A stretch of 64,000 nt of DNA from positions 8,680,001-8,744,000 of the forward strand of contig JBHGNT010000002.1 in the NCBI GenBank assembly GCA_043228905.1, given 5' to 3'. The notes under the pieces are model-generated. The model had not been told where the DNA came from. It saw only the letters and a list, made by a program, of their open reading frames with translations, and made no database searches. Positions 1,238 to 49,510 of the stretch are shown piece after piece (positions within the stretch are counted from its first letter, which is position 1; each line of letters starts with the position of its first letter). A program made the translations under genes and the position numbers. The DNA is from Azolla caroliniana (taxonomy: Eukaryota > Plantae > Polypodiophyta).

Positions 1238-4200
1238 ATGCCTCTTGTCAGCAAACCTTCGCATCCATCATGCCTCTCGCAGCATCATAGGAAAGCCATT
1301 CTTGGATACAACAACGAGGATTGGGTGGGTACTTACGGGTCATCGACGCCCCAACGCACCCTCACGCCCCAGCGATAGCACGCAGAATCCACCCTGACAC
1401 AGTATCCAACAACATGATTTGCGTGGGTCTAGACCTTGTGCGGGACGGAGACCACGAGGTCGAAATCCCTCCCCACTCGATCCTCAAGGAATATTTTGGG
1501 ATGTATTCGATGTCGGGTAAAGCTTACCGCACTTACGGAGGGCCAAACAAAGCTTTTGGGGAGATCGCTCGGATTTTGATGGAATACGCCATTGTGCATA
1601 CAAATCCCACGAGTATGCCATAGAACAAAGTTGCCATCATCATCCGAGCATATGAAGGAGACAAAATCGATTGGGGAATCATCACCGGCGAAGGAGTCCA
1701 TGCGGCGCTCGAATCTTTTCAAACCGGTAAGCGCTTGTTGCATGTGATTAATCACTTCCTCACAGTCCTCTACCCACCTCCTTCGGTTTCCCCTCATCGC
1801 ATCCTTACCTCCCCACCACCACCATGGAAACAACGAGAGAAGATTTTGGCGTTAACCCAGGAAGAATGGGAAGACCCCTCGCCTTCTCCACCTCCCTCGG
1901 CCGTTCGGAACCCTACTTCCGCCTCGGCACCACCCCTACCAAGAACACATAAACAACGGGCGTTAACAACGACCCGTGTCGAATGGGACGAAGCCGAGGA
2001 GCCCATCACGGAGGATGTCACCATACGCCAGAAAACACCAAGGACATCGATGCCCTTTCCACAACCGAGCCCATGCCCCACAAGCCAGCAGCCCTCGGGC
2101 ATACAACAACAAAAGCGGAAACAAGCCGAGGAGCCCACACCACCAGCCCCAGACTCACAGGATCAGCCGCCAAAAAGATGCTGCATCATTCGAGAGTCCA
2201 CAATAGAAACCGAGGGCACCCATCATCAGAAATCAAAAGAGGCCAACCCGACCTCCACGGCCATGGTACTAGTGGAGTCATGGCTCAAGTAAGTAGGATC
2301 GAGCATGGACAAACCACGCAGATATCAGAGGAGGAAGTCCTCGGTTACAAAGATCTCCTTGCGGAGGCATACGAGTTCAGTGCACTACTTCGACTGGGCA
2401 CAACATATGAGTTAATGGATTTCCTCGCGCACGCCCAAGTAGCTGTCGTTGCTCGTATGGCCAAGGAGCACGTGGAAACAAAGATGATCCAACACGCTCT
2501 AATGGGAGAAATTGAACCTCACGAGGATCGAGCCTTACAAAAGATAGGGTGGAAGAAGCAAGCACAAAATGCTTCTCTCCTCATGGAGCTACCAGATCTG
2601 AACACAACCTTAGTCAAGGCATATCGAAATCTGCACCACACTACTCGGGCAACCAAGGACATGGCCCAACGTATCAAAACGGCACATCAACAAGCCAAAA
2701 GGGTTACCGAGCTATGGAAAGCCGCCGAGGAGAAACTGGCATCATTCAAGTAGCAACATCCAGAACAACCGCCCTTAAGCCTCCCTGCGCCGAGTGACGA
2801 TGTCTCACCAGCCACTCTTCCGAACCTGAGCCTGCGCGTTGTGGGTACTAAAGCACACAAAGACGACACAACTCACCTAAGGGTAGCCACGGTCGATGCC
2901 AGCACAATGACAGAATTGGTATAGACAAGCGAGCCTTTGTCACGAGCAAATATAAGCCCGCACACTCAAACCAGCCACGCCTCCACGCAAACGCCACCAC
3001 CACCTATCATCATGGAACGATCGACACAGACGGATAGGGAACCCCCTCCCCGAATCCAGCAAACAGCAACCCAAATAGGGCCTCCCCTCCGGGACTACCA
3101 AGAGGAGCTTAAGGCCCAGATCGCTCTAGCTGAGTTAGCAGAACAGAACCACAACAACATTCTTGGCCAACTATGGGAACAAGCCGCGGGCCGTGAAGCT
3201 GACCTCAAGCGACTGATTGCTGAAAGCTCGGCCGCACTCAAAGAACAAGAAAGAGAGGTAATGACCCTTCAAGTCTCTATCACGGAGGCCAAAGAACGTT
3301 TCATCAATGAAGCAGAGCGGAATGGCCATTGGGAACACGAGCTCTTCGCAGAAAACTAGGAATTACGATGTCACCAAAGGGCATTACAAGAATTGGCAAA
3401 TGAACACATGCAGAAATGGAGGATCTCGGAAGAGCAAAGGGAAAAAATTTCTGATGCGTATCACCAATTGCAAACAGAGCACATCGCCGCTAGAGAATGA
3501 CATCGGGAGGCTTGGAGACAGGACATGGACGAAACTGTAGCTCAGCTCACCAAACATTATGAGCAAACAATCGCGCTCATCACCGAAAAAGCAAAAGATA
3601 ATCAAGCTACTTTAGCGCAAAAGCCAAGAAGAAGCCAAGGCCGCAAGGGAGGAAGTGGAAGTTCACCGAGCTAGCATCGGCATGGACGATACTAAAATCA
3701 AGATCCTGATCAACAAGTATCGCCAGCAATTTACCAAGACAATCGAGGAAACGCTTGACCATGTCTAGCAGGAGTGGTCAACCCAAGCCGCGGACCTACA
3801 TATACTACACGCGAATGCTGAGAACTGACGGAAAGAGGGCCGAGGGTTTTACAAGATGGATGACACCAACATCCAGACCCTCCGTGAAGACTTGACTGAG
3901 GAATATCCTACCTTAGCAGCATCCCACACCGCAACCATCGAGCAACTTTTAGAGGAATTCAATGACGATCTAATGGTGTTTCGCTTAGAAGCCGAAGCTT
4001 ACAAGGAGGAACGCCTTGCTACCGGGATTAACAGAGCTCCCACGACCAACGAGCAAGGACCCGAGCCACCCACCACGGAAGCCAGACCGGAGGAACCTGC
4101 CCCTAGAGATCCCCACATCCAACCCGAGCCACAAACTACAACCACGACCCTGCCTGAATCGGTACCAACAGAGGGTGGCACACACGACGACACAGCCATC

Positions 4201-4302
4201 CCCGAATCGACAACAAAACCTCCCTCACCAACCCCACCTTCTGAGCAGCTAGACCAACCTCGCGCCCCCAAGGATATCCTCGACATATTAGAAGAGGAGT
4301 AA
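1238..4302 (+). pseudogene. Decayed extra ORF (ORF3) of element A, coiled-coil rich
   Basis: Fragments (1321-1623, 1735-2292, 1983-2753, 2937-3359, 3856-4302) align by eye to ORF 45446-48040, e.g. GYKDLLAEAYEFSALLRLGTTYELMDFLA vs GYLDIPPVAHELAAILQFGTSYELVEWLA. Many stops and frameshifts. Start approximate. Confidence 0.8.
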
Positions 4303-4389
4303 AACAAACCTATTAGCCCTTGTATAAACGGGCAATTTTTGTAATTTGTTTTGTTTGCCAAATCCATGGTTACCCCTCCACATTGTGAA

Positions 4390-4431
4390 CCGTGGGTTTG
4401 ACGGACAAGGTCCTGTCCCATGGGCGTGCCA
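4390..4431 (+). other. tRNA-3'-half-like hairpin ending in CCA at the PPT position (inverted PBS)
   Basis: CCGTGGGTTTG-ACGGACAAGGTCCT-GTCCCATGGGCGTGCCA, then GG, then the LTR TG at 4434. No purine tract is present. Confidence 0.75.
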
Positions 4432-4433
4432 GG

Positions 4434-4851
4434 TGTTGTCCATAGGCCAGAAATATAAATAGATTATGTAAACTCGCCATTAGGTAGAAGAGTAGGTGAG
4501 GAAATAGGTAAAACTAGAGGTAGTCGAGTTTTAGCCCTCACAATCAGCCGATGGCTCGGGTCTGTCTCAAGAAGAAAACTATATAACCCGAGTTATGCAT
4601 ACCTCCAAGAAGGAGTTTTTTCTAGATCATTTTAGGGAGATTAATATCGTAGCACCGAGCTCTGCACGAACTGTTTCGGCCGAGAGCCATGTACTGTAAT
4701 CACTGCGAGCTTATCAATTAATATAAGTTTCGCTCTTACTATTCTTTTATCTGTGTATTCTCCCGTACTCGTAAACCAAGCTCCGTTTATACCTAACAGG
4801 TGTAGCCATGTATGCTCCTTGTAATCCTGTAGAAGAGGCTTCCACATAACA
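4434..4851 (+). repeat. 3' LTR of element A
   Basis: Starts TGTTG and ends TAACA, in the same position relative to the motif as the verified LTR at 48085. The partner LTR is not in the window, so the end is inferred. Confidence 0.65.
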
Positions 4852-5004
4852 CAATCCCTTGATACCGATAGCCTGTGGGCTCATCGAAGGTGTTTCCCTA
4901 GAAATGGTTAACACAACATGTGTCACACTTAGTGGCTTAGTGGCACATGTAAACTAGTACTACCCGACAAGAAGGATAAGCGTCGGATAGAAGACTTCGA
5001 GAAG

Positions 5005-6995
5005 ATGCTGAAAGAAGAAAACATAATAGAAGAAGAAGAGATCGTGACTCATATTATGGAAGAAGCCTCATTTAATGTCACCATCGGCGAAATCGAGGAA
5101 GTCGTGGACTTGAACTATCTACACGATCATCGCATGATTTCGGTTAGCTCCATTAACATGTACGCTATCATCGATGAATACCATCATGGTATCTTAATGG
5201 AGGAAGCTGAAGACAACACAAAATATAAAACGGTGGATAAGAAGATCAAGCCAGTTGCGGTTCCGCTACCGGAAGATAGCTGGCAAAAGATGAAGGAAGT
5301 CGCTAACGATCCAAACTTAAGAGATCTGAAGACAATAGGTCATGTCTTCTCTGAAGAGACAACGGGAATGCTACGAGTTGGAAGGGAGGATTTCCTCCTC
5401 CTTGAAGAAGAGCGAATGTTTCGTTTCGCAACATGCTTGAGAGACATGGGAAGGCTTTCACATTTTTCCCACAAGAAATCGGATGTGTTGATCCAAGGAC
5501 GATAGAGCTGATGGTGATCTTCACAGTGCTGCACGTACCTTGGAATTTGAAACCGATACTGGTTCCGAGAGCACACCTACCGAAGTTGATTGAGCTCTTA
5601 AAGGAGAAGGTGAATATGGGAATTCTGGAACCATCGAATGCTCCTTACTCTAATAGGTGGTTCACGGTGGCGAAGAAGAATGGATCATTGTGATTCATCC
5701 AAGATCTTCAACCCGTCAACAAGGTGACAATTCAGAATGCTGGAATCGGTCCGAGCATGGACGAATTTGCCGAAGCGTTTGCGGGGTGGTCATCTACTCC
5801 ATTGGCAATCTCTACCCTTGATACGACTAATTCCAATTGGCGATCGACAGTCGTGACATTACAACCATGAGGACTACGATCGGGCTCGTGCGGATGTGCA
5901 CCTTACCTCAAGGTGCAACGAACTCGGTGGCACATATGGTGAATGCCATGAACAAGGTCTTGAAGGATTGCATCCCAGACATCACGATGCCGTTCTTGGA
6001 TGATATTCCAATAAAAGGATGTTTGGATGAGGAGAAAGATGAATCGAAAGATAAGGAAGGGTGTAGAAAGTTCGTCGCGGATCATATGAAAGATTGTGAG
6101 AAGGTGCTCCAAAGGCTCGAAGATGCGAATTTGACATTTTCGGGAGAAAAATCTGCATTTGGGAAACCAGAGATCTTGGTGGTAGGTCACTTGTGCGGAG
6201 CATATGGCCGGAAACCTTCGCCATCTAAGGTGAACGCGATCCAGGATATGAAAGAAGAACGTGTAAACCAAACGGAGGTTCGAAGGTTCCTTGGAGCATG
6301 CGCGTTTTATCATATCTGGATTCCGCACTACACCCATGTCGTCGAGCCTTTATATGGATTGCTAAAGAAAAGAATGAAGTTTGAATGGTGAGACGAGCAC
6401 ACAAACGCGATGCGAAGATTGAAGAAACTACTTCTTGAAGCTCCAGCACTAAGAAAGGCCGACTATACTGAAGGGAAGCCGATTTATGCGACTGTAGATA
6501 CGAACCCAACCGGAATCGGGTGGGTCATCAACCAAAAAGGAGAAGATAATGCGCGGTATTCCATCCGGTTCGGAGGAAAGGATACGCCCAAGATACGCCC
6601 AAGTCAAGCAAGAACTTTGGGGTATTGTGTCAGTAGTGAAGATGGACAAAGACTACCTGATCGGGTCGGAAGTAATAATTGAGACAGATTGTCTCCCAAT
6701 CCTCGGGATGATCTCAGGATGCGTGACACCAGATATAGCTATGCTAAGGTGAATCGGCTATATCAAGTCTTTAAACCCAGACATCTGCCATATTGCAAGG
6801 AAGAAGTACAGCTTGCCTGACATGCTATCGAGGGAAATATTTGAGAATGAAGGTGACATGGTTTCAGAAGATGAAGATGTCACCCTCGACTTCTTCAAGA
6901 TGGCTCGACTATCGGCGGAAGACAAGGGCACGCTAACCCTCCACGCCTTCAACAAAGATGAGTACGAAGGGGAGTGGTTACTAATTGGCAGATTC
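5005..6995 (+). pseudogene. Fragmented pol (RT + RNase H) of a different Ty3/gypsy lineage
   Basis: KYKTVDKKIKPV, HVPWNLKPI, SNAPYSNRWFTVAKKNG, LPQGATNS, FLDDIPIKG, and RNase H VDTNPTGIG..ELWGI..IETDC. Multiple stops and frameshifts. Confidence 0.85.
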
Positions 6996-7760
6996 CGGCC
7001 ATAGTACCAACATCCCGTTGCGGTTTTTTCTTGCCAGCTTCCGGCACCACTTTAACTCCTGCTTGTCGAGGGTCTGAAAATGTTGTTTGCACCATCATTG
7101 TGCATCCGAATTTGCTCTTGCTGGTCGTTTCCATCGCGTGTTGGTCCGCCTCTTCGACCATGACCACGGGGATGATCCACCTCCATTTACAACATCTTGT
7201 TGTCGGTGTGCGAGCTCGTTGACACAAGATTCTTTGTGATTGTCGGGATGTGCAGGTTCATAATCTTTCCCTTCTGTCCAACATGGTTGAGGGGAACCTC
7301 ATCGATGTGCTTGATTTGCGGGGTGTCGTCTCCGGTTTCGAGCACCCCTGGTTGTTCCGTGTTTTCTAGATAAGAAAACCACTCCGCGTGGCTTGTCATA
7401 TGCTTTGACGGTCTGGAATCAAGATACCATACCTCATTTGGTTTCAAGGTCCTTGTCTTCATCGAATTGGCCTTGTGTTTCATCACAAAGGCTGGGCCCG
7501 ATCCATCTCCGGAACCGGATCCTTCCGGTTTGTCAGCGTAGTGCGAGCGTTGCCGGTTTCCCCAATCGGCCTTGCCGGATCCAGATTTGTTTGAATCGGC
7601 ATGCTTCTTCTCGCACTCGCTCTCCCTGTGGCCCTTCCGGCCATAGTACCAACATTCAATTGCGGTTTTCTCTTGCCGGTTTCCGGCACCGCTTTGACTC
7701 CTGCTTGTCGAGGGTTTGAAAATGTTGTTTGCACCATCATTGTGCATCCAAATTTGCTCT
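6996..7760 (-). pseudogene. Ty1/copia gag zinc-knuckle/protease fragments, partly duplicated
   Basis: ECWYYGRKGHRESEC knuckle and WYLDS protease motif, homologous to 55400-55900. Segment 6996-7120 repeats 7637-7760. Confidence 0.8.
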
Positions 7761-8149
7761 TGTAGAAAGTAGCGTGCGGAAGCAAGTATGAAGACAGAAC
7801 AGAGGAAGGAAACTCAGGTTCAATGGAGAGCTTAAGCTTACACGGTATACGCGGGAGAGACAGAGAGAGAAACACAAAAAACTATATTCAACAATAATAC
7901 TCAATCTCTGTGTACATAAGACGTGCTCAGTGAGCACTTTTATACAAGCCCTAGAAGGACTGACGGAAGTACTGACAGTACTTCAATGCTCATCAAGAGC
8001 CCCTACACTACCTCCCAAATATATTCCTCACGGAATATCTTTCCTAACGACCTCCCGGTTTACGCACTCGGCCTAACCGATCGGTCCCAACCGATCTGGT
8101 TCTCGGCTTCTTCAGCCAATCCGGCCGATGTTGAGCTTGTCTCTCAACA
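7761..8149 (-). repeat. copia 3' LTR
   Basis: On the minus strand it begins TGTTGAGAGACAAGCTC (as at 54185 and 59494) straight after the PPT and ends in CA. Confidence 0.8.
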
Positions 8150-10143
8150 CTCCCCCTCAAGCTCAACTCGAGGCTCTTCGGGATCCTCGGGCTCACAGCT
8201 CCGGTTCCTCCTGGCTTCACGCCTCGCTCGCGCTCCTCGACCTGTTCGACTCCGCGCGCTTCGACCCTTCCGGTCGGCTTGTATGCTCATGTAGCCCTCA
8301 TCTGCTCTTCTGTTGTTGCGGTGTTGACGCTTCTTCTGCTGCCTTTTCTTCCGCTTGGGCCTCGGTTGATTCAGCGTATCTGAATCAATCATCCGAACTG
8401 ACTCGGCTACCTTCGATCGGTTTTCGCTCTCGTCCGAGTTGGCTGTCTCCAACTCGTCTTCGGTCTTCTCGCCCTCGATGGCGTCATCTTCCCCATGCGT
8501 GGTTGGCTTCGGCTCTCTCCTTCGGTTGCTCCCCTTCTGTCCTCTTCCGAACTTTTCCGCGGGTCCGCCCTCGGCTTCTTCAGCCGATCCGTCTTCAACC
8601 AAGTCAACAAAGGAGTCAACAGACTCGGTGTCATGGTCACCGCTCCTTTCCTGCTACCTTGCTTGGTCGTTCGGGACTGTTCTCCCCCTCAAGTTCGGCA
8701 CGTCGAGGTGACGCAACCCGAGCGCACTTGAGAATTGCCGCAACTTGTCCAGACCAAGAGGCTTTGTGAAGATGTCGGCAGTCTGCCGATCCGTCGGAAC
8801 GTACTGAAGTTCGACTTCACCAGAAAGGACACGCTCACGGACGAAATGGTAATGCACCTCAATGTGCTTGGACCGTGCGTGAAAGACGGGGTTCTTCGCG
8901 AGTTGGATGCTGCTGAGGTTGTCGCAGTAGATCGTCGTTGGATCAGACACCTCCTCTTGCAGGTCCTTAAGTAGCCGCTTCAACCATATGGCTTCGCATG
9001 TCGCGACAGCCGCTCCTCGGTACTCAGCTTCGGTGCTCGATAGTGCAATTGTCGGCTACTTCTTACTGCTCCACGCGATCGTGGCACTCCCGAGGGAGAA
9101 CGCGTATCCAGACGTGGATCGGCGATCGGCGGCATTGCCAACCCAATCAGCATCGGTGTAGCCGACTAACTGCGTGGCTGCACCGGTTTGATATAGCAGT
9201 CCTCGGTCCTTAGTGCCGTTGACATACCGAAGTATGCGTTGCGCACACTGAAGGTGCTCCTCGGTAGGTCGCGCCATGAACTGACTGTTCACCCCGACCG
9301 GATAACTGAGGTCGGGTCGGGTGATAGTCAAGTATATAAGGCTTTCGACAATTTGTTGAAACCTCGTCGGGTCGAATACCTTTCCCGTATCGGGACGAAG
9401 CTTGACGGTTCTGTCCAGAGGAGTCGAGACGGACTTACAGTCGGCCATCCCGAGCTTGAAGAGCATACTCAGCACGTAATGACATTGGCTGATCAATATG
9501 CCTTCGGGGGTACGGATCACTTCGATCTCGAGGAAGTAATGAAGGTCCCCCAGATCCTTCATGTCGAACGATGCCACAATCTGGAGCTTCACGCGGTCGA
9601 TTTCACCGAGGTCGGCGCCGGTGATGACCAAGTCATCAACATATAGTAATATACTAACCGGTCCGAGTCGACCTTTCCGGATGAACAGGGAAGAGTCCGA
9701 TTTTGAAGTGACGAAGCCCATCCGACGTAGTTGTTGCTTGATCTTCGCGTTCCAGGCACGCGGGGCTTGCTTCAGTCCATAAAGGAACTTCTTCAGTCGG
9801 CATACTGCCGAGGAGTTCGTTCCAGAGTGAAATCCGGGGGGTTGTACCATGTACACTTGTTCCTCAAGGTCACCTTACAGGAACGCATTCTTTACATCCA
9901 TTTGATGTAAGTGCCACCCCTTGGCCGCGGCTACTGCCAGCAAAACACGAACGGCGCAAACGTCTCATCGTAGTCGATGCCGTGTTTCTGCGCGTAGCCC
10001 CTTGCCACTAGCCGAGCCTTGTACCGGTTGACCGAGCCATCGGTGTTGTACTTGACTTTGTACACCCATCTACACCCGATCGGCTTCACACCCTTCGGTG
10101 CGTCAACCAGGTCCCAGGTCTCGTTCTCCGCCAATGCGTGCAT
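7761..10143 (-). mobile_element. 3' half of a Ty1/copia element (RT, RNase H, PPT, 3' LTR); 5'-truncated; same family as 54185-59910
   Basis: RT motifs ETWDLV..YKARLVA, LYGLKQAPRAW, YVDDL; RNase H TDADW..CDN..HIEVHYHF. PPT GAGGGGGAG on the minus strand at about 8150-8158. Confidence 0.92.
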
Positions 10144-37700: not shown

Positions 37701-39271
37701 GCATCACTTCACTATCCACGGAGTCGAGTTCAATCTCACCTTTGTCGTCCCAAGATCGTCCAACCATGTAGCCTACGAGTGCTTACTAGGAAGACCATTC
37801 CTACGTATAGGCCGCCTGGTAATGGATTTTGGGACCGATATAATCTATATGCGAAAGGACAACAAAACCTTTCGCATCAAAGCATACACACAAAAAGTGC
37901 ATGAACAAGAAGGTAGCCCTCTCGTAGACAATTGGTCAGAAACCACTGAGTTCGAGATCAACCTCCTAGCGTGCAACCCCACAAAGACAGTTCAACTCTT
38001 GACTAGAGTCCAACACTTTCCTCAAAGCCTCGCCACTTCCAAAGAGGAGAACGCACGTGAGAGAGACAACCAATCCGTCGCCTCCGAGACGTCAGAAATG
38101 AATTGGGTGCAGGCTCTCACCACAACCGACGCAATGTACCCTATAGGCACAAGTGTTGTGACGAGAACGGAGAAACAATCTCATGCTTCAACGTCACCAC
38201 CCTAGGACCTCGGCGAAAAGACGTAGACGTAAAGGACGAAAAACTGGTACAACGAGTCACACGTCCAGGTGACGTCACGACCACTCAGGAGGCTATGATG
38301 GAAGCGGACTTCCCAGAGCATTTCAAACTCTATGAACAAGGGAGTAGGGCGGTGGCTTGTAAGAGACCGCAACACAACCCCCAAGGCCTAGGAGAAGTCT
38401 ATGATGGACCAACAAGGGTGAAAGAAATCAACCTCGGGAAAGGGGCAGACTCCAAACCGGTGTTCATAGCTACAGATCTCCAGCCCGACGAGGAGGCGTC
38501 CTTGATCACTCTCCTCACGGAATTTAGCGACGTGTTTGCATGGTCGTACGTCGACATGAAGGGAGTCCCAGCTGAGGTCGTCACACATAGTATCCCCATG
38601 CGAACCGACGCCCGCCCAATCCGGCAAAGGCCACGTCCAATGAACCCTAACTACGCCCAACAAGTGAAAGCCGAAATCAACAAAATGTTGGCTGTAGGCA
38701 TTATCTACCCAATCGAATGAACTACTTGGGTCTCCCCAATTGTCGTCGTCCCAAAGAAAAACGGCCAGATCCGCATATGTGTAAACTACTGCCAAGTTAA
38801 CGAAGCCACTATCAAGGACAATTACCCGGTACCCTACATTGAACATTTACTCGAAAGGACTGCGGGAGCAGAAGGGTATAGCTTCATCGACGGGTTCTCC
38901 GGGTACAACCAAATCTCGGTGGTCCCTGAGGATCAACACAAGACAGCTTTTGCCACGGAATTTGGTACGTTCGCGTATAAACAGATGCCTTTCGGACTCA
39001 CGAGCACCGTGAGCACCTACCAAAGAGCGGCGGACCATATCTTTGCCACAAGGTTACGACAAGGGGTGGAGTCTTATGTCGAAGACTTATGTTGCAATTC
39101 GAAATGGCATGACCACTCGGGGCTACTCCGTTTGAAGTTCGAAAAATGCAGAACCTATCAACTCTCTCTCAACCCGCTCAAGTGTCAGTTTTGGGTCAAG
39201 CATGAAATAATATTAGGACACGTCGTGTTCCGCCACGTGATCTCGACCGATGAGGCAAAAGTAAAACTCAT
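34736..39271 (+). pseudogene. gag, protease and RT of element B (disrupted)
   Basis: Gag LKQEANETVRDY and CCHC knuckles (CFNCQDPHMVSEC), protease IIDTGAG, RT DVFAWSYVDMKG..KTAFATEFG..MPFGL. Stops and frameshifts present. Confidence 0.9.
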
Positions 39272-39728
39272 TGTTACCCGGACCCGGACAGTCAGTTTTA
39301 CCGAACAAGTGGGAAAGCGTTGAAAACGGAGTCGGTTCGGATCGACTGTTCGGATCAATGACTCAGCAGTAAACGAAGAGAACTAAGTTAGTTAGATAAT
39401 TTTGTAATTCTTGATAGTAAGTAGGAATAGTTCTTGATGAGAAAAGACCTTCGGTATACCTATAAAAGGGAACCGAAGGCATTGTAAGAAAGGTCGTTTT
39501 ATTTAGTAATATAAGTTTAAGTTAGGAATATCCTGTACGGATTCTGTGTTCTTTCTATTGTCTATGTTGTTAAGTGCAAGCTTCCTAATTTATAACTAAG
39601 TAACGATCACGGTAATTACCGATTAATATAGTATAATTCCATTCGTAAAACACAATTCCTTGTTAGAACGTTGAGTAGCGACGTTCACTCTTCTGTATCG
39701 GTAGTAGTTAGTAATTAGCCGATTAACA
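39272..39728 (+). repeat. 5' LTR of element C
   Basis: TGTTACCCGG...GATTAACA, with a TATAAAA box at 39461. Confidence 0.97.
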
Positions 39729-39739
39729 CAGAAGAATTT

Positions 39740-39752
39740 TGGCACGCCCGGT
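39740..39752 (+). promoter_or_regulatory. PBS of element C (probably tRNA-Arg type)
   Basis: TGGCACGCCCGGT, 11 nt after the LTR. The tRNA identity is from memory of Tat-type PBSs. Confidence 0.75.
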
Positions 39753-39787: not shown

Positions 39788-42700
39788 ATGTCGTATAAAG
39801 AGGAGACACCGGTCAGTTGTAAGCGCCCTCGTACAAGGTTAGTTACGAAGGCAGTGCAGGAAGCGTTCATTGCGCAAGAACAGCCGGAATCAAGCACAAA
39901 GTGGTCGAAACTTCCTGACTTATCCGATCAATTACCTTCAGACGAAAAACAGACAGAAGAGGTATCGTTTTACGACATTTGGGACGATATGCCTTATACT
40001 TATTCTAAGTTCCGGGAAGGAACAGATGCGGAAGCACATTATAGGGATTTCTTAACGACATGGGAGATTAACCATGGAGCTTAGCGATTGTCGGCAGATG
40101 CCGAAGATAAGTCAAAAATCGCTGAGTTCGTCTTATCATTAGACGGATATTCTGCCAATTGGTTTGCGCAGAACGGTCTTCAAGGATTTCCATCCTTTGA
40201 AGTGTTAACTAGTAAATTTTTACAATTATTTCATCAACAAATTCCGCAGAAGGATTTGATTGCGCAATTTTATGCGTTATATCAAGAAAAAAATGAAACA
40301 GTATCTCAGTTTGTGATACGATTTCAGAACTTACAGCTTCAGATTTCAAGGCCGATTCCGGATAATGAATTAAAAGAAGTCTTTCTGGAAGCTGTAAAAG
40401 AACCATTAAGGACGACATTGAAAGTGTTCGATTTTCGAAATCAGACTATCGAACAAGTAATTGATAAAGCAATAGAAATGGGTCGACCACCGGTCAATGT
40501 TCAGAGTATGGACATGTCGGCATTACACCGTACATTACCGACAATAGAGGAGTTACAATTTCGACAAGCAGTTCAATGCACCACTTGTTTAAATACGGGG
40601 CATTCGGCAATTGAATGTACGTTAAGAACACATTGTACAATATGTCATTCAAAATTACATTCAGTAGAACAATGTGAATATAATCTGCTTAATAAGACTA
40701 CGGCGTCAGTATGACAAATTTTTACTGACAATGGTTACCAAAATAACACTAATCTGTTCAATGGTTATCAAAATAATAATTTTTCACAAAATCAGCAAAA
40801 TGTACAACAAAATCCGGTTCTACAGCCGAATCAGATCTTTTCACAACAAAATATGCAACCCACTCAAGTGACTCAAGCATTTCAACCAGGTTTTGCTCAA
40901 TCCAACCCACCATTCGTACAGAATCCGAATCAATATTTTCAACAAAATAATCAAAGTTTCCAACAAGGTAACCCACCATTTCAAGGGTTTCAACAGAACT
41001 GTCCGAATGTGCAACCGAATTCTACATTTCAACCAAATCCGACATTTCAACCGGGTAATATGACCTTTCAACATAATACTCAAACCGTTCCACAAAATAA
41101 TCAAATGTTTCAACAGAATAATTTTCCGCCAAATCAGGAGTTCGGGATAACACAAAATGTAGCACAACCAAATGATAATACTGAACAATTTAGGCAGAAT
41201 CGGTATAAAAACAAGAGATTTTACAAACCAAAAGCTACACGTCAATACCAACAAAACCCGAGGGGTAATGAAGAGCAGCAATTTAATAACGGCCAATTTG
41301 CACATGGAGAGACCAGTGCAACATTTGTACCCACTTGTTATATTTGTCGACAACTAGGCCATTATGCTAATCAATGTCCGGTTAAAGGAAAGGGTCCAGC
41401 AGTTAATATGGTAATACCGGAAGTTCAGCAAGTAACGATACGCAGCAAAAGCAAACAATCAGAGTGGGAAATTCAGGAAGAAGTTCGGAAGGCGGCAAAA
41501 GAATGGGTTGACGAAGCAAATCAAAGTAATGTGAATCGAATGTTACAAGACAATAACATTGACTAGAACATCGCTGTACAACAGTCATTGGGGAATAAGG
41601 AACAGGAAGAAACTTGGAAACTGTTGGCTGATTGCCAAGTGTCATTGCCACTTACGGGCTTACTTAAGTTAGTACCAAGGTTTACAGAAAAAGTGGCAGC
41701 ATTAATTGCATATAAAGATTCCGAACAAATAGCAGTACACTACAATCAGCCAAGTAATAACCCTTCGATCATGGATGAACAGAATCCGTCGATTAAGGTA
41801 ATACTTTACGGGCAAGAAATCAGAAATGTGATTATAGATGGAGGCTCGGGAGTTAATGTGATTAACAAAGCTACATGTGAAAAACTGGGAATCACGGAAT
41901 GGGAAGCATGTCCGTTTTGGTTACGAATGGCAGATACAAGTACGGTACGCCCGATTGGTTTGCTTCGACAACTGGATGTAATAATCGGGGGACACAGTTT
42001 TCAGATTTCGGCAGTAATTTTGCAGTTAGAAACACAGGGAGCATACCCCTTGTTATTGGGGAGACCATGGTTAAAGACAGCTAATATTAAACAAAATTGG
42101 AAACAAAATGTGCTAACATTTAGGAAAGGAAAAACTAAGGTCAGGATTCTGACGCACAACAAAGTGACAACAAGCAAACAGAGTTTACCTATACATGCAG
42201 AAGCAGTTAATATGATGGAAGGATTGGACGAGGAAGAAGAAAGTCAGTATTTCAATGATAATCAGAAAATCATCCCTCTATTTGAGGTAGATATTTTGCA
42301 AGCATTAACACCATATGTAGACTCACACGAAGAAGTGCCAATAGATGAGCAAACAATGAAAGAAATACGAATGCAACAAGAAGCTACAAATAAGGAAATG
42401 AAGGTATCTCAGAGAGTGCAAGCCTCAGCATTGGAGGAGATCGATTTGGTAGGAGTAGAGGATGCTGAAAGAAAAACAGTCTTGATTGCTAGAGATTTGG
42501 CGGAAAATGACAAACAGACATTAACAACATTACTATTACAATATAAAGATGTTTTTGCATGGTCGTTTGACGATATGAAAGGTCTGGATCCCGCTTTTTG
42601 TCAACATCAAATCAATTTGCATAAAGATGCAAAGCCAGTACAACAACGCAGGTACAGGTTGAATCCGAATTATGCTATCAAAGTAAAAGAAGAAATCGAT

Positions 42701-45278
42701 AAACTCTTAAAAGTAGGATTTATTCGACCCGTCAAAAAATCAACATGGCTGAGTCCGATAGTAGTAGTCCCGAAAAAGAATGGGAAAATTCGCGTATGTG
42801 TGGATTACAGAAAATTGAATGCAGCGACAATTACGGATGCGTTTCCGTTGCCATTCACAGATGGGATATTAGATGCAGTAGCGGGACATGAAATTTATAG
42901 TTTCTTGGATGGGTTCAGTGGGTACAACCAAGTACGGATGAATCCGGAAGATCAGGAAAAGACAGCTTTCGTCACAGAATGGGGTGTCTTTGTGGCAGTA
43001 GTAATGATGTTCGGTTTAAAAACAGCTCCAGCTACATTTCAGCGGGTAATACAAGAAATATTCGGGGAATATATTCCAGCTTTCATGCAGGTGTTTTTAG
43101 ATGATTTTGCGGTATATAGTCAGAAAGTTGATCATTTTGAGCATTTACGGCTATGTTTAGAAAAATGTCGAAAAGGGCGTCTTAGCTTAAATCCAGCCAA
43201 ATGCGCATTCGGAGTAATGAGTGGTACGTTACTTGGGCATATTGTCAGTCAAGAAGGGATTGCAGTGGACCCAGACAAAGTTAAAGCAATTATTGAGGCA
43301 ACACCACCAACAAATGCTAAAGCTCTAAGTAGATTTTTGGGTCAAATTCGGTGGCACAGTAGAATGATGAGATATCTAGCAGACATTGCTATTCCGTTAC
43401 ACACAGCAGTACACAAAGTTCCTTTTATATGGACAAGTATAGAACAAGATGCATACGAATGCCTCAAGAAGATGCTGACGAAGGTTCCGGTAGTTCAACC
43501 ACCGGACTGGAACAAACCATTTCATGTTTTCGTCGATGCGTCGGACATTGCCATAGGCAGTGCTTTAATGCAATTATCCGAACCAAACTGGTATAGGCCG
43601 GTATACTATGCCAGTAGGAAACTTTCGTCGGCCGAAAGAAACTATTCAACAACCGAAAGAGAAGCTTTGGGAATGATATATAGTGAACAAATTTCGACAT
43701 TACCTTTTGGGTAAGAAATTTACATTTCATGTGGATCATTCGGCTCTACTGTATCTAGTTTCCAAACAAGAATTGACAGGCAAGTTAGCCAGATGGACGT
43801 TATTGCTTCAAGAGTTTGAATTCGACATTATACATCGACCAGGAGCACAGCACGCGATTGCTGACTATCTCAGTCGGCTTGAGTCTGGAGAAGAAGCGGT
43901 TGGGGTTAAAGATGATTTTCCACATACTCAATTATTTCGGGTTGAGGCAGTAAAAGCACAAGAAGTGAATGAGGAAAAAGAGGATGAATGGATTTCCGAA
44001 ATGACGATATTTCTATCAACAGGAATTCCGGCCGAACACATGTCGACAGATGAAAGAAAAAGAATTGCAGTACGAAGTCGAAATTTTTGTTTATTTAATG
44101 ACATGTTGTATCATAAAGGAGCGGATGGAATATGGCGAAGGGCAGTACGGAAATTTGAAAAATCAGCCATATTAACAGAGTCACATTGTGGAATTGCTGG
44201 CGGTCATTACGCAGGAGAAGCAACAGCCAGAAAAATATGGAATAGCGGGTTATGGTGGCCAACGGTGATGAAAGATGCTAACGAATACTGTAAGAAATGC
44301 GATTTGTGTCAAAGAATGGGGCAACCGATCGAAAAGGATCGAATGCCTTTTCAACCGGTTTTACCTCTTGAGCCATTTCAGAAATGGGGCTTAGATTTTG
44401 TTGGCCCATTCAAACCAGCAGCTGCAAGAACCGGTAATCGATATATCATAATTGCGACTGACTATTGCACAAAATGGGTTGAAGCAAAAGCTCTCAGGGA
44501 CAATACAGCAGCATCCACAGCAAAATTCCTGTATGAAAATATATGGTGTCGATTTGGTTGCCCAATAGAATTGGTAAGCGATCAAGGCACTCATTTTATT
44601 AACAAGTTAATTAACGAATTAACCAATTACTATGCCGTAGTTCATAAGAAAAGTACGCCTTACTATCCCCAAGCTAATGGATTGGCAGAATCGACAAATA
44701 AAACAATTCAAACAATTTTAAAGAAGATAGTGAATGAAAATCGTACTGATTGGGATCAAAAGTTAAATAGTGCATTATGGGCATATCGTACTTCGTACAA
44801 ATCATCCATTAAATCAACACCTTTCCGAATGGCATTCGGACTTGAAGCCGTTATGCCGATCGAATTTCAAATTCCAACACTTCGTATCCAAGCGATGAAT
44901 AAGTTAAATGAAATAGAATCGGAGCAGATACGCAAAGAGGCTTTATTAGTATTAGAAGAAGAACGGATTCAATCAATGTCAGCACTAGAACACAAGCAGA
45001 GACAAATCAAGGCATTCGTAAATTGACATCGAAGGAAATCGGAAGAGCAATTCGAAATTGGGAAATCGGTATTGGTATTCCAGACGAGAATGGGACTTAT
45101 GCCTGGGAAACTCCGGTATAGATGGACAGGTCCAGTATGGATAATTAATAGTAAAAATGGTACGTATCAGCTGGGATCATTAACCGGAGAGGTTTTACCG
45201 AAATGGGTAAATGGATTCCGGCTTAAACCGTATTTGGGAGATATGCCGGTGAATCCGTTTATTCAAACGGAAGAGTAA
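39788..45278 (+). pseudogene. gag-pol of element C (Gag with 3 CCHC knuckles and a Q/N-rich tract, PR, RT, RH, INT)
   Basis: A single frame from 39788 to about 43683 is broken by stops at 40082, 40712 and 41564; there is a frameshift near 43683 and a stop at 45024. Motifs IIDGGSG, FLDDF, VDASD..ERE, GHY..C..C, LDFVGP, SDQG, QANGLAE. Confidence 0.95.
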
Positions 45279-45583
45279 AAAAAAATAAAAAAAATAAAAA
45301 GAATATAAAAAAAATAAAAATAAAAAAATAAAAAAAAACTAACTAACTCACTCAATAGTTCTTGTCAAATGCAAAAATACAATCTTGCCATAACAGTCTG
45401 AATCGACTATAAATAGAAAGAGGAATTGCATGATTATTAAAACGAGTGCAGATATCGAAACAGTCTGAGCCTTCGTGCCCTAGTTCGCCCAAACTCTGTT
45501 TTTCTGATTTTCATCGCTACAGAAGCTGTGCAGATCTCCAACCGTCATCGACAAGTGATTCAGAACAAGCAAACACAGAAGTC

Positions 45584-48040
45584 ATGCCGATTCCTGTGTC
45601 TGAAGAACTGCGACTATGGCTTCATGAGAGAAACTTACAAGGTTTCATCAAAGTAGCAGAAGCGGAACCTCATCCGCAGGCGGAAGAATTGGTACAACAG
45701 TTAGACATCACCAAGGTCACCACAAAGAAAATACGAAATGCATTACAGATGCCAAGAGGAGGCTTTGAGGCAGTTAAAAAACCTTCATCAGAAGCACTCC
45801 AATTGTATTTCGGGGAATACTCACCCTCGGCAAAAGCATATCAGACTTATGGAGGTCGGGATGAGTTTTTCCATGAAGTGGCTAGATTTTTACTAGAGGT
45901 GGGATTTGTCAGTCCCCGTTTTTATTGTATGCCGAAAAAAAGGGCTGGGTTTATCATAGCCGCATACGAAAAGGAGGATTTCAACTGGCCACTATTGTCG
46001 GGGGAAGCTCTGAGAGAGCAGCTACAAGGGGTGAAAACAGGAAAACCAATGAAGCAAATTTTTGGTCGTTGGCTATCGGTATTGTTTCCGATTCAAGAAT
46101 CGGAAATTCCTGTTCAGTCAAGAAGACCACCGATAGTACAAGCACCGCGAAGACACCGACAGGTAGTACATGAAGAATGGATAGAGGAAGAATCGGCACA
46201 TGCCGATAATATACAAACGGATACGCCTCAGTCGGAACCACCAAGACCAGAGAATTCCGAAAACCGGCAACCAGCAGCCGAACAAGAAACAGTTGACCAT
46301 TTGATAAACAAGCAGCAGCCGACAGAAAATCGACAACAACCAGAGAAGATGCGACAAAGGACAAGGGTTAAACAAAAGGCTAATAGGCAATTCCAACCAG
46401 AAAACAGTGATGGGTCAGCACCGAAAAGGCAACGCACAAAGGAAAATTCGAATACGCTTGTAGTAGCAGAAGTAATAAAACCAGGGAATGAGAGCGTTTC
46501 GACACAACCTCAACAAGGCCAATCTTCAAAAGTAGCAATTCGGGAAGCACATGGGTACTTGGATATTCCACCAGTAGCACATGAATTAGCTGCCATTTTA
46601 CAGTTCGGAACTTCATACGAACTGGTTGAATGGTTGGCTAAAAGATTGACAGAAGTATCAGAACGGCTGGCTCAAGAACATAATGACCGAATAATGATAC
46701 AGAAAGCCTTACGAGGAGTGTTGGAACCTCAAGAAAAAGCAGAGATAGAGAAAATCGGCCGGAAAAGAAGTGCACAGAATAGAGGGGAGGCTATTGAAAT
46801 GCCACCATTACATGAAGCACTGGTCGAAATTCATAAAGAATATGAAACGGCACGCAAAGCAGCCAGTGATATGGCTGAAAGATACAAAAGTGTATCAGCA
46901 TCGGCGGAGGTGCTGAAACATCAGTTTTGTAACATACATGCAGAAAATAAAGAACTAAAAGAAAGTCTAAACAAATGGGAAACGCAGGCACGGCTTATGG
47001 CGTCGGAGTCAGAATGGCAGCAGAAATTGGAGGATGCTGAGAAAGTACGACAAGCAGAAACAACAAGGGCCAACAATTCTGTATTTCGAACTACAGAATT
47101 AGAAAAACAAATAGAAACCATTCAGAATGGCCAATACAAAGTTCTCGAAGAAAAAAATCAATTAATAAACGAATTACAGAAAAATCTGGAAGAAGCTAAG
47201 ACGGCCAATCATACATATACCGAACAAATTGAAGAATTCGAAAGGTATATAGTGTCACAGGAAAGTCAATTGACAGAAAAAGAGCGGAGTCTTGAAGAAG
47301 TCAACAGAAGAATTACGGAACACCAGGAGGAATGGAGCAAAGAGAAATCGACATTCGAACAACAACTAAACGAAATTCGGAAGATATCGGAACAAAGGCG
47401 GCTGGACATATATGTAGTCGAATCCAAATTAATGCGGGCTGAAAGTGAAAACCGAGCCACTATTACGGATTTACGGAAAGAGTTGCAAGCCACTCAATTC
47501 GTCGCAAGCATCACTAGGGACAAAGTGCAGCGCATCATAGGGAAACATCGAAACCTAGCAAAGGAAATGATCAATGAATCCCTTGCGCAAGGATGGAAGT
47601 TATGGACGGCACAAGCGGCGGAATTACAGTTATTGCGTGCCGACAAAAATAACCGTCAGGTCCAAGGTGCAGGTTTTTTTAAAATAGCACAAAAGGATAT
47701 TGACAATATCCAAGAGGATATCATGAAAGATATGGACGAAATTGCGGCATTTTACAGAGAAGAAATTCAACGTATTATGCAAGAATTGGACAAACATGAT
47801 ATAGGCACTTCCGTTCAGTTGGATAAAATTGAAGCTGAAAGAACCAGCAACACTCCTGGTCTTCAAACTCCTGGAAGAAGTGAACCAGAGCAGCCAACCG
47901 AATCACAACATTCAAAACCTGCTCCGAATGACGACTGTGACACAGAAGAAGAGGAAGATATAGAGGGAATACATCCAAGGCCAGAAGAGCCTTCGATTTT
48001 TGATATTCTGAACGATTCGGATGAAGAGCTACAAGAATAG
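45584..48040 (+). CDS. Extra ORF3 of element C, about 818 aa, intact: globular N-terminus, disordered linker, long coiled coil, acidic tail
   Basis: The frame is open from 45446. TATAAATA at 45408 lies upstream. It is homologous to the decayed ORF at 1238-4302. No evident TM helix. Confidence 0.85.
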   Translation: MPIPVSEELRLWLHERNLQGFIKVAEAEPHPQAEELVQQLDITKVTTKKIRNALQMPRGGFEAVKKPSSEALQLYFGEYSPSAKAYQTYGGRDEFFHEVARFLLEVGFVSPRFYCMPKKRAGFIIAAYEKEDFNWPLLSGEALREQLQGVKTGKPMKQIFGRWLSVLFPIQESEIPVQSRRPPIVQAPRRHRQVVHEEWIEEESAHADNIQTDTPQSEPPRPENSENRQPAAEQETVDHLINKQQPTENRQQPEKMRQRTRVKQKANRQFQPENSDGSAPKRQRTKENSNTLVVAEVIKPGNESVSTQPQQGQSSKVAIREAHGYLDIPPVAHELAAILQFGTSYELVEWLAKRLTEVSERLAQEHNDRIMIQKALRGVLEPQEKAEIEKIGRKRSAQNRGEAIEMPPLHEALVEIHKEYETARKAASDMAERYKSVSASAEVLKHQFCNIHAENKELKESLNKWETQARLMASESEWQQKLEDAEKVRQAETTRANNSVFRTTELEKQIETIQNGQYKVLEEKNQLINELQKNLEEAKTANHTYTEQIEEFERYIVSQESQLTEKERSLEEVNRRITEHQEEWSKEKSTFEQQLNEIRKISEQRRLDIYVVESKLMRAESENRATITDLRKELQATQFVASITRDKVQRIIGKHRNLAKEMINESLAQGWKLWTAQAAELQLLRADKNNRQVQGAGFFKIAQKDIDNIQEDIMKDMDEIAAFYREEIQRIMQELDKHDIGTSVQLDKIEAERTSNTPGLQTPGRSEPEQPTESQHSKPAPNDDCDTEEEEDIEGIHPRPEEPSIFDILNDSDEELQE

Positions 48041-48082
48041 GCGTGGGTTCGCTGGACAAGGTCCTGGCCCACGGACGTGCCA
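48041..48082 (+). other. tRNA-3'-half-like hairpin ending in CCA at the PPT position (inverted PBS)
   Basis: GCGTGGGTTCG-CTGGACAAGGTCCTG-GCCCACGGACGTGCCA, then AG, then the LTR TG at 48085. Confidence 0.8.
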
Positions 48083-48084
48083 AG

Positions 48085-48541
48085 TGTTACCCGGACCCGG
48101 ACAGTCAGTTTTACCGAACAAGTGGGAAAGCGTCGAAAACGGAGTCGGTTCGGATCGACTGTTCGGATCAATGACTCAGCAGTAAACGAAGAGAACTAAG
48201 TTAGTTAGATAATTTTGCAATTCTTGATAGTAAGAGGGAATAGTTCTTGATGAGAAAAGACCTTCGGTATACCTATAAAAGGGAACCGAAGGCATTGTAA
48301 GAAAGGTCGTTTTATTTAGTAATATAAGTTTAAGTTAGGAATATCCTGTACGGATTCTGTGTTCTTTCTATTGTCTATGTTGTTAAGTGCAAGCTTCCTA
48401 ATTTATAACTAAGTAACGATCACGGTAATTACCGATTAATATAGTATAATTCCGTTCGTAAAACACAATTCCTTGTTAGAACGTTGAGTAGCGACGTTCA
48501 CTCTTCTGTATCGGTAGTAGTTAGTAATTAGCCGATTAACA
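48085..48541 (+). repeat. 3' LTR of element C
   Basis: About 99% identical to 39272-39728 by manual comparison. Confidence 0.97.
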
Positions 48542-48546
48542 CTCAT

Positions 48547-49510
48547 CCTCAACATGCCACCCCCCACGAACGAGAAACAACTACAAGGGTTCATGGGATA
48601 CGCGGGTTACTATAGGCGCTTCATTAAGATGTTCGCGGACAAGGCTAGACCACTCTACTCCTTATTAAAGCAGTTCGTGTGGACAGAAGAATGCACACAC
48701 TCCTTCAAGCTCTTGAAAGAGCGCCTAACTAAGGTCCCCATCCTCCGGCCTCCCGATTGGACCAAAGAATTCCACGTGCACACCGACGCTTCCGCCTTCG
48801 CGATTGGTGTAGTGCTAGCCCAACCCGGTGAAGGGGCACTCGACCTACCGGTCACCTTCGCTAGTCGCCAGCTAAATGTCGCAGAACAAAATTACTCCAC
48901 GACGGAACGGGAGGCTTTGGCCATGGTCTACAGCGTAAAGAAATTCCGCCACTACCTGTTGGCGTTCCGGTTCTCGTTTTTTGTAGACCATCAGGCCCTA
49001 CTCTACTTAGTAAACAAAACTCATGCCACTGGACACATCTCATGATGGATCGTAACGTTACTCGAGTTTGACTTCAAGGTAGTAGTGAGAAAAGGGAAAG
49101 ACCATGTACTCGCCGATCATTTCTCGCGGATTCCCAACGGAGAAGAAGCCACTGGGGTCGATGATGAAACACCAGATTCAACATTATTCGCAATCGATAC
49201 CGTACCAGCATGGGCATCAGACATAGTTTGCGTCCTAACCGAAGGAGCGTCCTTCCTAAAACAACTACCACGAACACACGCGCATGCCTTGCTAAAGAAA
49301 TGTGGCCCCTTCACGATGCTCCAAGGCAATCTGTACCGTCGGGGTAACGACGATCTACTTCGGAGGTGTATAACAAACTATGACGTCGTCACCACCCTTG
49401 AGCAAGCTCAGTGCAGGAGGGGAAGTGGTCATTTCAATCACGAGACCTCTGTGTGCAAGATCCTCCAGTCCGGCCTATGGTGGCCAACACTCTTCAAAGA
49501 CGCATACGCG
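48547..49510 (+). pseudogene. RNase H and integrase zinc-binding region of element B; integrase core deleted
   Basis: HTDASAFAIG..TTERE..VDHQAL, then GHFNHETSVCKILQSGLWWPTLFKDAY, after which integrase homology stops. Confidence 0.85.

Follow-up and report, generated by a model that had tools for sequence, protein, structure and literature searches.

Which primer starts the second (plus) DNA strand of a retrotransposon that has no polypurine tract? This question is raised by element C, a Ty3/gypsy-type retrotransposon bounded by long terminal repeats (LTRs) that lies within a 64,000-nucleotide (nt) stretch of Azolla caroliniana DNA (contig JBHGNT010000002.1, positions 8,680,001 to 8,744,000), referred to here as the window. 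The polypurine tract is the plus-strand primer of LTR elements and is treated as universal (PMC5371799, PMC3185511). In element C its place is taken by a 42-nt module ending in CCA, which is followed by 2 nt and then by the 3' LTR. On the comparisons given below, this module is evidently a conserved, cis-acting replacement for the polypurine tract, derived from a transfer RNA (tRNA) and working by a mechanism that we infer. Since the CCA stands exactly at the place of the polypurine tract's last base, the module is read as the site of plus-strand priming, and it probably does serve as that site and fix the end of the plus-strand primer.

A tRNA 3' end in place of the polypurine tract

The module of element C, which follows the element's third open reading frame (ORF3), and the equivalent site in a second, diverged element of the window (element 2) have the following features.

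48041-48082, + strand: motif GCGTGGGTTCGCTGGACAAGGTCCTGGCCCACGGACGTGCCA, 42 nt, immediately 3' of the ORF3 stop codon
48042-48073, + strand: stem-loop, whose outer helix pairs CGTGGG (48042-48047) with CCCACG (48068-48073) and is the equivalent of a tRNA T stem
48052-48053 with 48066-48067, + strand: middle pairs of the stem-loop
Apex of the stem-loop, + strand: GGAC/GTCC with an AAN loop; bulges TTC(G) and T48065
48073-48082, + strand: tail GGACGTGCCA, the same as the final 10 nt of tRNA-Arg(UCU) plus CCA except for G>A at 48075
48083-48084, + strand: dinucleotide AG between the CCA and the LTR, NG in all copies
4391-4433, + strand: motif copy of element 2 (stem-loop, tail GGGCGTGCCA, then GG; the motif proper is 4391-4431)
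4434 to about 4913, + strand: 3' LTR of element 2, beginning TGTTGT

The CCA that forms the 3' end of the motif in element C occupies 48080-48082, and the dinucleotide after it lies at the position where the removal of 2 nt by integrase would be expected. As the original prediction had noted, no purine run precedes the 3' LTR; within the final 30 nt the longest reaches 4 nt. The commonest tail among the relatives is GGGCGTGCCA, and the reverse complement of the element C tail, TGGCACGTCCG, differs at one position from the element's own primer-binding site (PBS). When the window was searched with a 17-nt tail pattern, allowing up to 3 mismatches, 2 matches were observed where 0.05 were expected, the second being the equivalent site in element 2. 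There the motif sits 88 nt past the stop codon, as opposed to directly after the ORF3 stop in the element C family.

Conservation of the motif among related elements

Twelve motif loci were compared: element C, element 2 and ten public contigs. When the 12 nt that stop 2 nt short of the LTR are set against the 3' end of tRNA-Arg(UCU), 10 to 12 of the 12 positions agree at every locus. The spacing of CCA, 2 nt and TGTT is invariant throughout, so that the placement of CCA exactly 2 nt before the LTR, first described for element C, holds for 12 of 12. A polypurine tract was not found at any of these loci, where purine runs in the last 30 nt do not exceed 4 nt. Five of the loci are metagenome-assembly contigs reached through ORF3 homology (L001 to L005), each of which carries the motif and ends GTGCCA-AG-TGTTAC. 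Element 2 is more distant, with an integrase C-terminus 61% identical to that of element C and an ORF3-like region that is 30-38% identical as protein. Between these two families the motif is 0.78-0.85 alike, while the 150 nt on each side are 0.19-0.56 alike, which is background. Because the motif is kept while its flanks are unalignable between families, it appears to be under selection, and its conservation across families and species labels makes it look functional.

A wider comparison is consistent with this. Hundreds of contigs, drawn from sequencing runs that carry four organism labels, align to positions 47850-48350 at a likeness of at least 80%; these are DNA contigs whose depth is not usable. 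Among the variants listed inside the motif only T>C at 48053 is frequent, a change by which a U.G pair becomes C-G. In IMG/VR the pattern of tail, NG and TGTT gave 52 matches, all of them chance occurrences on unrelated contigs with no hairpin, and the element sequence was not found in any run recorded as RNA, while two runs presumed to be RNA contained none of it.

The clade and its PBS types

In a tree of reverse transcriptase (RT) sequences, element C and two further motif-bearing elements, L087 and L088, fall in one clade (support 85/91). A Riccia sorocarpa element, L090, falls outside it, and this relative has an ordinary polypurine tract, GAGAAAAGGGG, together with a PBS for tRNA-Asp. 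The tree leaves out element B, the older element into which element C is inserted, because of a stop codon in its RT piece. The nearest named RT proteins are from liverworts and a fern (44-51% identity), and no usable LTR pair was found for three other candidates (L089, L091 and L092). The clade is, as far as these sequences indicate, one of plant (bryophyte-type) gypsy retrotransposons without a polypurine tract.

Identity to element C is 66% for L087 and 64% for L088 over pol1, or 71% and 70%, respectively, when the RT core is compared. With LTRs that are 85-86% alike, both must be old copies. Their PBSs, TGGCGACTC... and TGGCGATCC..., begin 2 nt past the 5' LTR (CT-TGGCGA...), are of a type to which no tRNA was assigned, and have only TGGC in common with the complement of the tail. 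Before the 3' LTR, L087 reads ...CCAGGTGTGCCA-AG (more fully, ...CCACCAGGTGTGCCA-AG-TGTTGG) and L088 reads ...CCGGGTGTGCCA-GG-TGTTGG, tails whose sole departures from the tRNA-Arg(UCU) end are transitions of the CpG type. In L145, which is related to L088, the tail is undecayed (CCGGGCGTGCCA-GG-TGTTGA) and matches the tRNA-Arg(UCU) end at 12 of 12 positions. The two junctions of L087 and L088 have a common form when followed outward, namely a tRNA 3' end with CCA, then NG, then TGTT. The tRNA-Arg tail thus appears to be kept independently of the PBS type and not to be simply an inverted copy of the element's own PBS; the "inverted PBS" of the original prediction does not fit L087 and L088, where the tail resembles tRNA-Arg(UCU) and the PBS begins TGGCGA.

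The gap between LTR and PBS also varies: L087 and L088 have 2 nt, the element 2 family 5 nt, the element C family 11 nt and the Riccia relative 19 nt. Removal of as many as 11-19 nt by integrase would be required at the PBS-side end.

On the contig of L145, directly after the L088-type 3' LTR, positions 4241-8991 hold another gypsy element, chromovirus-like and with weak chromodomain matches.

Origin of the motif

The 3' end of plant tRNA-Arg(UCU) given in the original prediction exists exactly as stated. A scan of metagenome contigs located the string at 81 loci, where ARAGORN identifies tRNA-Arg genes, the majority with anticodon UCU. One such gene, at L073:2942-3014 (ENA series ERZ10343xx, neighbouring accessions), has the 3' end GTGGGTTCGAGTCCCACCGGGCGTG. 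The motif copies with the GGGCGTGCCA tail retain GTGGGTTCG, CCCAC and GGGCGTGCCA, which amounts to 24 of the last 28 nt of the tRNA (23 of 28 in element C). Relative to the tRNA, one C is absent before GGG, and a hairpin of 16-19 nt stands in place of the remainder of the T loop. The 42-nt module is accordingly best explained as a derivative of the 3' part of host tRNA-Arg(UCU), comprising T arm, 3' acceptor strand and CCA. ARAGORN found no tRNA gene in the window or in the retroelement loci, an Rfam search of 47000-49000 at a permissive threshold gave no tRNA or other credible match, and no upstream partner of the acceptor strand was found beside the CCA and the T-stem mimic.

Two non-autonomous relatives of element 2, on the reverse strand of L006 (600-1266) and L027 (1-700), bear on the use of this tRNA. 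Each has an LTR, CAATT and a long PBS, which complements 76 nt of tRNA-Arg(UCU) in L006 and 35 nt in L027, anticodon and D arms included, where 12-18 nt is usual. Both also bear the motif, followed by TG or CG, before an LTR. In these elements the reverse transcriptase seems to have copied a long part of the tRNA primer, or even the whole of it. Since the PBS copies 35-76 nt of genuine tRNA, a real tRNA would prime the minus strand, and tRNA-Arg(UCU) is evidently a primer used in this group.

A related arrangement was seen on L042 (1-2055), a tandem array with units of about 545-590 nt. Each unit consists of LTR-like sequence, 5 nt (CAATT on the reverse strand), a full 76-nt tRNA-Arg(UCU) plus CCA, and 2-4 nt; the array has neither the motif nor a polypurine tract. 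It looks like an LTR with a fully copied tRNA primer that has been tandemly amplified.

Whether the tail could instead be the complement of a tRNA 5' end, as in the L042 arrays, was also considered. This origin was rejected because the CCA, GTGGGTTCG and the CC before GGG (in L087, L088 and L145) fit only a sense 3' end.

Predicted structure

The conservation and covariation that the original prediction had proposed as its own check were found, at 12 loci for the former and in nine copies for the latter. In this small sample 93.5% of cells in the predicted helices are paired, against 24-49% when the partners are slid, and there are two pairs with compensatory changes (C-G to A-U and A-U to G-C). 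In L087 a hairpin of different sequence occupies the same place. Fold energies from single-sequence folding are ordinary when compared with shuffled sequences (z = -1.6 to +0.9), and stability alone is therefore no evidence for the hairpin. The T-stem-like helix opening on TTCG of the earlier description is better read as a T arm with a hairpin of 16-19 nt inserted in its loop, the two together making one long, irregular stem-loop.

Proposed priming of the plus strand

These features can be combined in a model, related to the first option of the original prediction, in which a host tRNA starts the plus strand on minus-strand DNA. Once the minus strand had been copied and its template cleared by RNase H, the minus-strand DNA would expose a PBS-like site, 5'-TGGCACGCCC(G)-3'. 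Host tRNA-Arg(UCU), or its 3' CCA fragment, would anneal to this site and be extended. The 3' end of the primer would be set at the A of CCA, the plus strand would begin NG-TGTT..., and integrase would trim the usual 2 nt (NG). The RNase H activity that strips the tRNA primer from the minus strand would later strip the plus-strand tRNA too. That the primer is host tRNA-Arg(UCU) or its 3' fragment is a tentative proposal to which we give somewhat less than an even chance. More doubtful is the full scheme in which host tRNAs prime both DNA strands, the minus strand from tRNA-Arg(UCU) or another tRNA and the plus strand from tRNA-Arg(UCU) or its 3' CCA fragment. Calculated energies of tRNA-site duplexes were too permissive to discriminate, an unrelated PBS scoring -29 kcal/mol.

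The chief competitor is a primer cut from the element's own RNA, a plus-strand version of the second option of the original prediction. RNase H would spare the stem-loop and tail; the GC-rich stem would refold, the 10-11 nt tail would stay hybridised to the minus-strand DNA, and a 3' OH would be left at the CCA. The substrate would then imitate a tRNA on a PBS, and the tRNA-like sequence would be a mimic and not a docking site. The plus-strand primer of every described retroelement is a remnant of the template (PMC5371799), and with an own-RNA primer L087 and L088 would not have to package a second tRNA. The main point in its favor is the conserved stem-loop beside the tail, with its two compensatory pairs and with G.U pairs that can form only in the plus sense; the differing hairpin at the equivalent place in L087 also speaks for it. 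However, it leaves unexplained an identity of 10-12 nt to one tRNA in elements with about 64-66% RT and about 33% ORF3 identity, it demands a precise RNase H cut after CCA in an all-RNA strand without a purine tract, a fresh tRNA copy would not be functional at once, and the stability of the hairpin is unremarkable. By sequence it stands level with the host-tRNA version as an account of the plus strand, and on balance we regard it as rather unlikely. A host tRNA is preferred because the tail keeps its identity to one tRNA across deep divergence and whatever the PBS type, and because the G>A change in the tails of the young copies element C and L001 keeps a G.T wobble between the tRNA and the minus-strand DNA. 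A new tRNA copy would, moreover, function at once, although only if a tRNA anneals to its complement.

Several points weigh against host-tRNA priming of the plus strand. Elements whose PBS is not for tRNA-Arg(UCU) would need to package two tRNA species. Without any tRNA, the G-rich tail GGGCGTG could itself resist RNase H and serve as a short primer of an atypical kind. In element C, element 2, L006 and L027 some G.U pairs are possible only in the plus sense, as would suit a fold of the element's own RNA, and this favors an own-RNA primer; mismatches in L001 and L004, however, would pair only in the minus sense. The independence of tail and PBS rests on two old copies, L087 and L088, and the C>T change that their tails have in common would mismatch the tRNA, although in copies of this age it may be decay.

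The remaining explanations give the motif another task or none. Pairing of the tail with the element's own PBS, the third option of the original prediction, would close the RNA into a circle, aid strand transfer, control tRNA loading or shield the PBS from 3' tRNA fragments, with the plus strand primed in some other way. The tail does complement the PBS over 10-11 nt in the element C and element 2 families, and long-range 5'-3' contacts are known, as in the bipartite PBS of Ty3 (PMC5371799). Yet the G>A change in the tails of the young copies element C and L001 would put a C.A mismatch against the PBS RNA, and neither the fixed CCA and 2-nt spacing to the LTR nor the missing plus-strand primer is accounted for, which leaves circularization improbable. 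In a second version of self-priming, resembling that of Tf1 but from the 3' region, the motif would be cut after CCA and would anneal to the 5' PBS instead of a host tRNA, starting the minus strand. In favor of this, the tail and the tRNA end fitting the PBS agree in sequence in the element C and element 2 families. No regenerated PBS with motif-specific bases (the hairpin insertion) was seen among these elements, however, the PBSs of L006 and L027 copy 35-76 nt of genuine tRNA, and the plus-strand primer is again left unexplained; we consider this version the least probable of all. Both ideas are weighed against by L087 and L088, whose tails were kept tRNA-Arg-like beside a TGGCGA... PBS that they do not fit (only TGGC is common to that PBS and the tail complement). 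Lastly, the motif might be a fossil with no role in priming, left by aberrant reverse transcription, or might act in ORF3 expression, RNA stability or transcription by RNA polymerase III. Its position directly after the ORF3 stop in the element C family, the absence of an Rfam match and the ordinary fold energies are consistent with this. Against it, the motif is conserved and its flanks are not, its register to the LTR is fixed at 12 loci, in element 2 it lies 88 nt from the stop codon, and the B-box-like GGTTCG is interrupted and has no A box with it; a fossil is thus very unlikely.

Structure and setting of element C

The remaining features of element C are as follows.

39267-39271 (5' copy) and 48542-48546 (3' copy), + strand: target-site duplication CTCAT, flanking the element
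39272-39728, + strand: 5' LTR, 457 nt, termini TGTTA...TAACA
39729-39739, + strand: 11-nt spacer CAGAAGAATTT from the LTR end to the PBS
39740-39751, + strand: PBS TGGCACGCCCGG (TGGCACGCCCGGT when taken to 39752), complement of the final 13 nt of tRNA-Arg(UCU) plus CCA
40088-45026, + strand: gag (Retrotrans_gag, CCHC zinc knuckle), protease, RT, RNase H and integrase, as Pfam matches in this order
45446-48040, + strand: ORF3, 864 amino acids, stop TAG at 48038-48040
48085-48541, + strand: 3' LTR, 457 nt, same termini as the 5' LTR

The two LTRs differ at 5 positions (about 99% identity), and together with the CTCAT duplication they bear out the LTRs and target-site duplication reported earlier for this element. 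Element C has the LTRs with TG...CA ends, the target-site duplication, the gene order and the tRNA-complementary PBS of a Ty3/gypsy element, but not the polypurine tract. Its PBS is offset by 11 nt from the LTR end, an unusually long gap in place of 0-5 nt; in L005 the spacer (4011-4021) is CAGTATAATTT, which keeps the 11-nt length but not the purines of element C. A Pfam search found neither a chromodomain nor a second (archaeal-type) RNase H in element C, and no credible family for ORF3. Only eight homologues of ORF3 were found, every one on metagenome-assembly contigs, and with 30-38% identity to the element 2 version it is evidently a fast-diverging protein.

Despite its 99% LTRs, the coding region is damaged, with in-frame stops after 40714 and 41566 (40714-40853 and 41566-41588, between the parts for gag and pol) as well as a frameshift at 43683-43714 in RNase H. 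This copy is probably itself non-autonomous; in L001 and L002 the pol reading frames are longer and unbroken. Between integrase and ORF3, positions 45277-45342 form a tract of about 65 nt that is almost pure A with scattered T and G, which may be a signal for internal priming or for termination, or just low-complexity sequence.

Element C lies in the RT region of element B (about 33510-53540), which is older and Athila-like. The LTRs of element B are about 97% alike, and its PBS, TGGCGCCGCTGCCGGGGA, is of the tRNA-Asp type and follows a 6-nt spacer. The purine tract earlier ascribed to element B is present as a purine-rich stretch before its 3' LTR.

Comparison with known systems

If host tRNA does start the plus strand here, second-strand synthesis would be tRNA-primed and independent of a polypurine tract, which would be new for retroviruses and LTR elements; to our knowledge, it is not known for any of them. 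A literature search that was incomplete and in part uninformative yielded no description of a tRNA tail replacing the polypurine tract. A recently active clade without the tract implies either that its enzymes select a structured, non-purine primer or that a host tRNA primes on a DNA template within the particle, and either outcome would widen the known activities of RT and RNase H. There is also a practical side: annotation tools that seek a polypurine tract will find none here and may mis-score or filter elements of this clade, for which the tRNA-Arg tail, NG and TGTT provide a ready marker.

Element C resembles Athila and allied non-chromovirus gypsy elements of plants (PMC6317226) in its gene order, its extra 3' ORF, its 5-bp target-site duplication and its lack of a chromodomain and second RNase H. 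In Athila, however, a tRNA-Asp PBS is typical, as found in element B and the Riccia element, while the element C clade has a PBS for tRNA-Arg(UCU) or one beginning TGGCGA..., and lacks the polypurine tract. According to supplement 5 of that survey, 84% of Athila members have a PBS for tRNA-Asp or tRNA-Asn (PMC6317226). The accessible portions of this survey of plant elements (Neumann 2019) give PBS types and no such module, and the PBS string of element C is absent from the supplement text they contain (PMC6317226). Helenus, a group of TRIMs (miniature retrotransposons with terminal repeats; Kojima 2024, PMC10886601), and Cassandra likewise are LTR elements containing sequence that comes from a tRNA or another small RNA. 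In Helenus the tRNA-like sequence lies in the LTRs, where it is presumed to be an RNA polymerase III promoter, beside a normal PBS and polypurine tract, and no link to priming was found (PMC10886601). Unlike Helenus and TRIMp3, element C has its motif outside the LTR and no polypurine tract.

Polypurine-tract priming has in common with the module a position directly upstream of U3, an end 2 nt before the TG of the LTR, and the presumed left end of the linear DNA. The tract is made of purines (e.g., GAGAGAGAGGAA in Ty3; PMC5371799, PMC3185511), whereas here a stem-loop and a tRNA 3' end with CCA are found and the primer may be a host tRNA. The bipartite PBS of Ty3 is similar in placing a tRNA-related sequence close to the genome's 3' end, beside or in U3, but its 3' segment is antisense to the tRNA, binds the T and D arms and serves minus-strand initiation (PMC5371799), whereas the module is in the tRNA sense and has no polypurine tract beside it. 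With minus-strand tRNA priming the module has in common the tRNA 3' end including CCA, the 2-nt gap to the LTR and the outward order CCA-NG-TGTT. The site of that reaction lies on genomic RNA; the site proposed here lies on minus-strand DNA, at the other end of the internal region. Unlike a PBS, the module would not be renewed from tRNA in each cycle, which fits its 1-nt deletion and its T-loop insertion.

Among other elements, Ty1 has pairing between the 5' and 3' parts of its RNA, and in Tf1 the minus strand is self-primed by the 5' end of the transcript and the polypurine tract is kept. In both Tf1 and element C the element's own RNA may supply a primer; the PBS of element C matches a host tRNA. 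In plant RNA viruses with 3' tRNA-like structures, and in the Mauriceville retroplasmid, a CCA end marks the start for the replicase or reverse transcriptase, the "genomic tag". Those ends are the physical 3' end of an RNA and the template for the first strand, whereas the module is internal, with AG and U3-R after it, and would serve the second strand. The module nevertheless comes close to the genomic tag idea, in which tRNA-like ends mark the place where replication starts.
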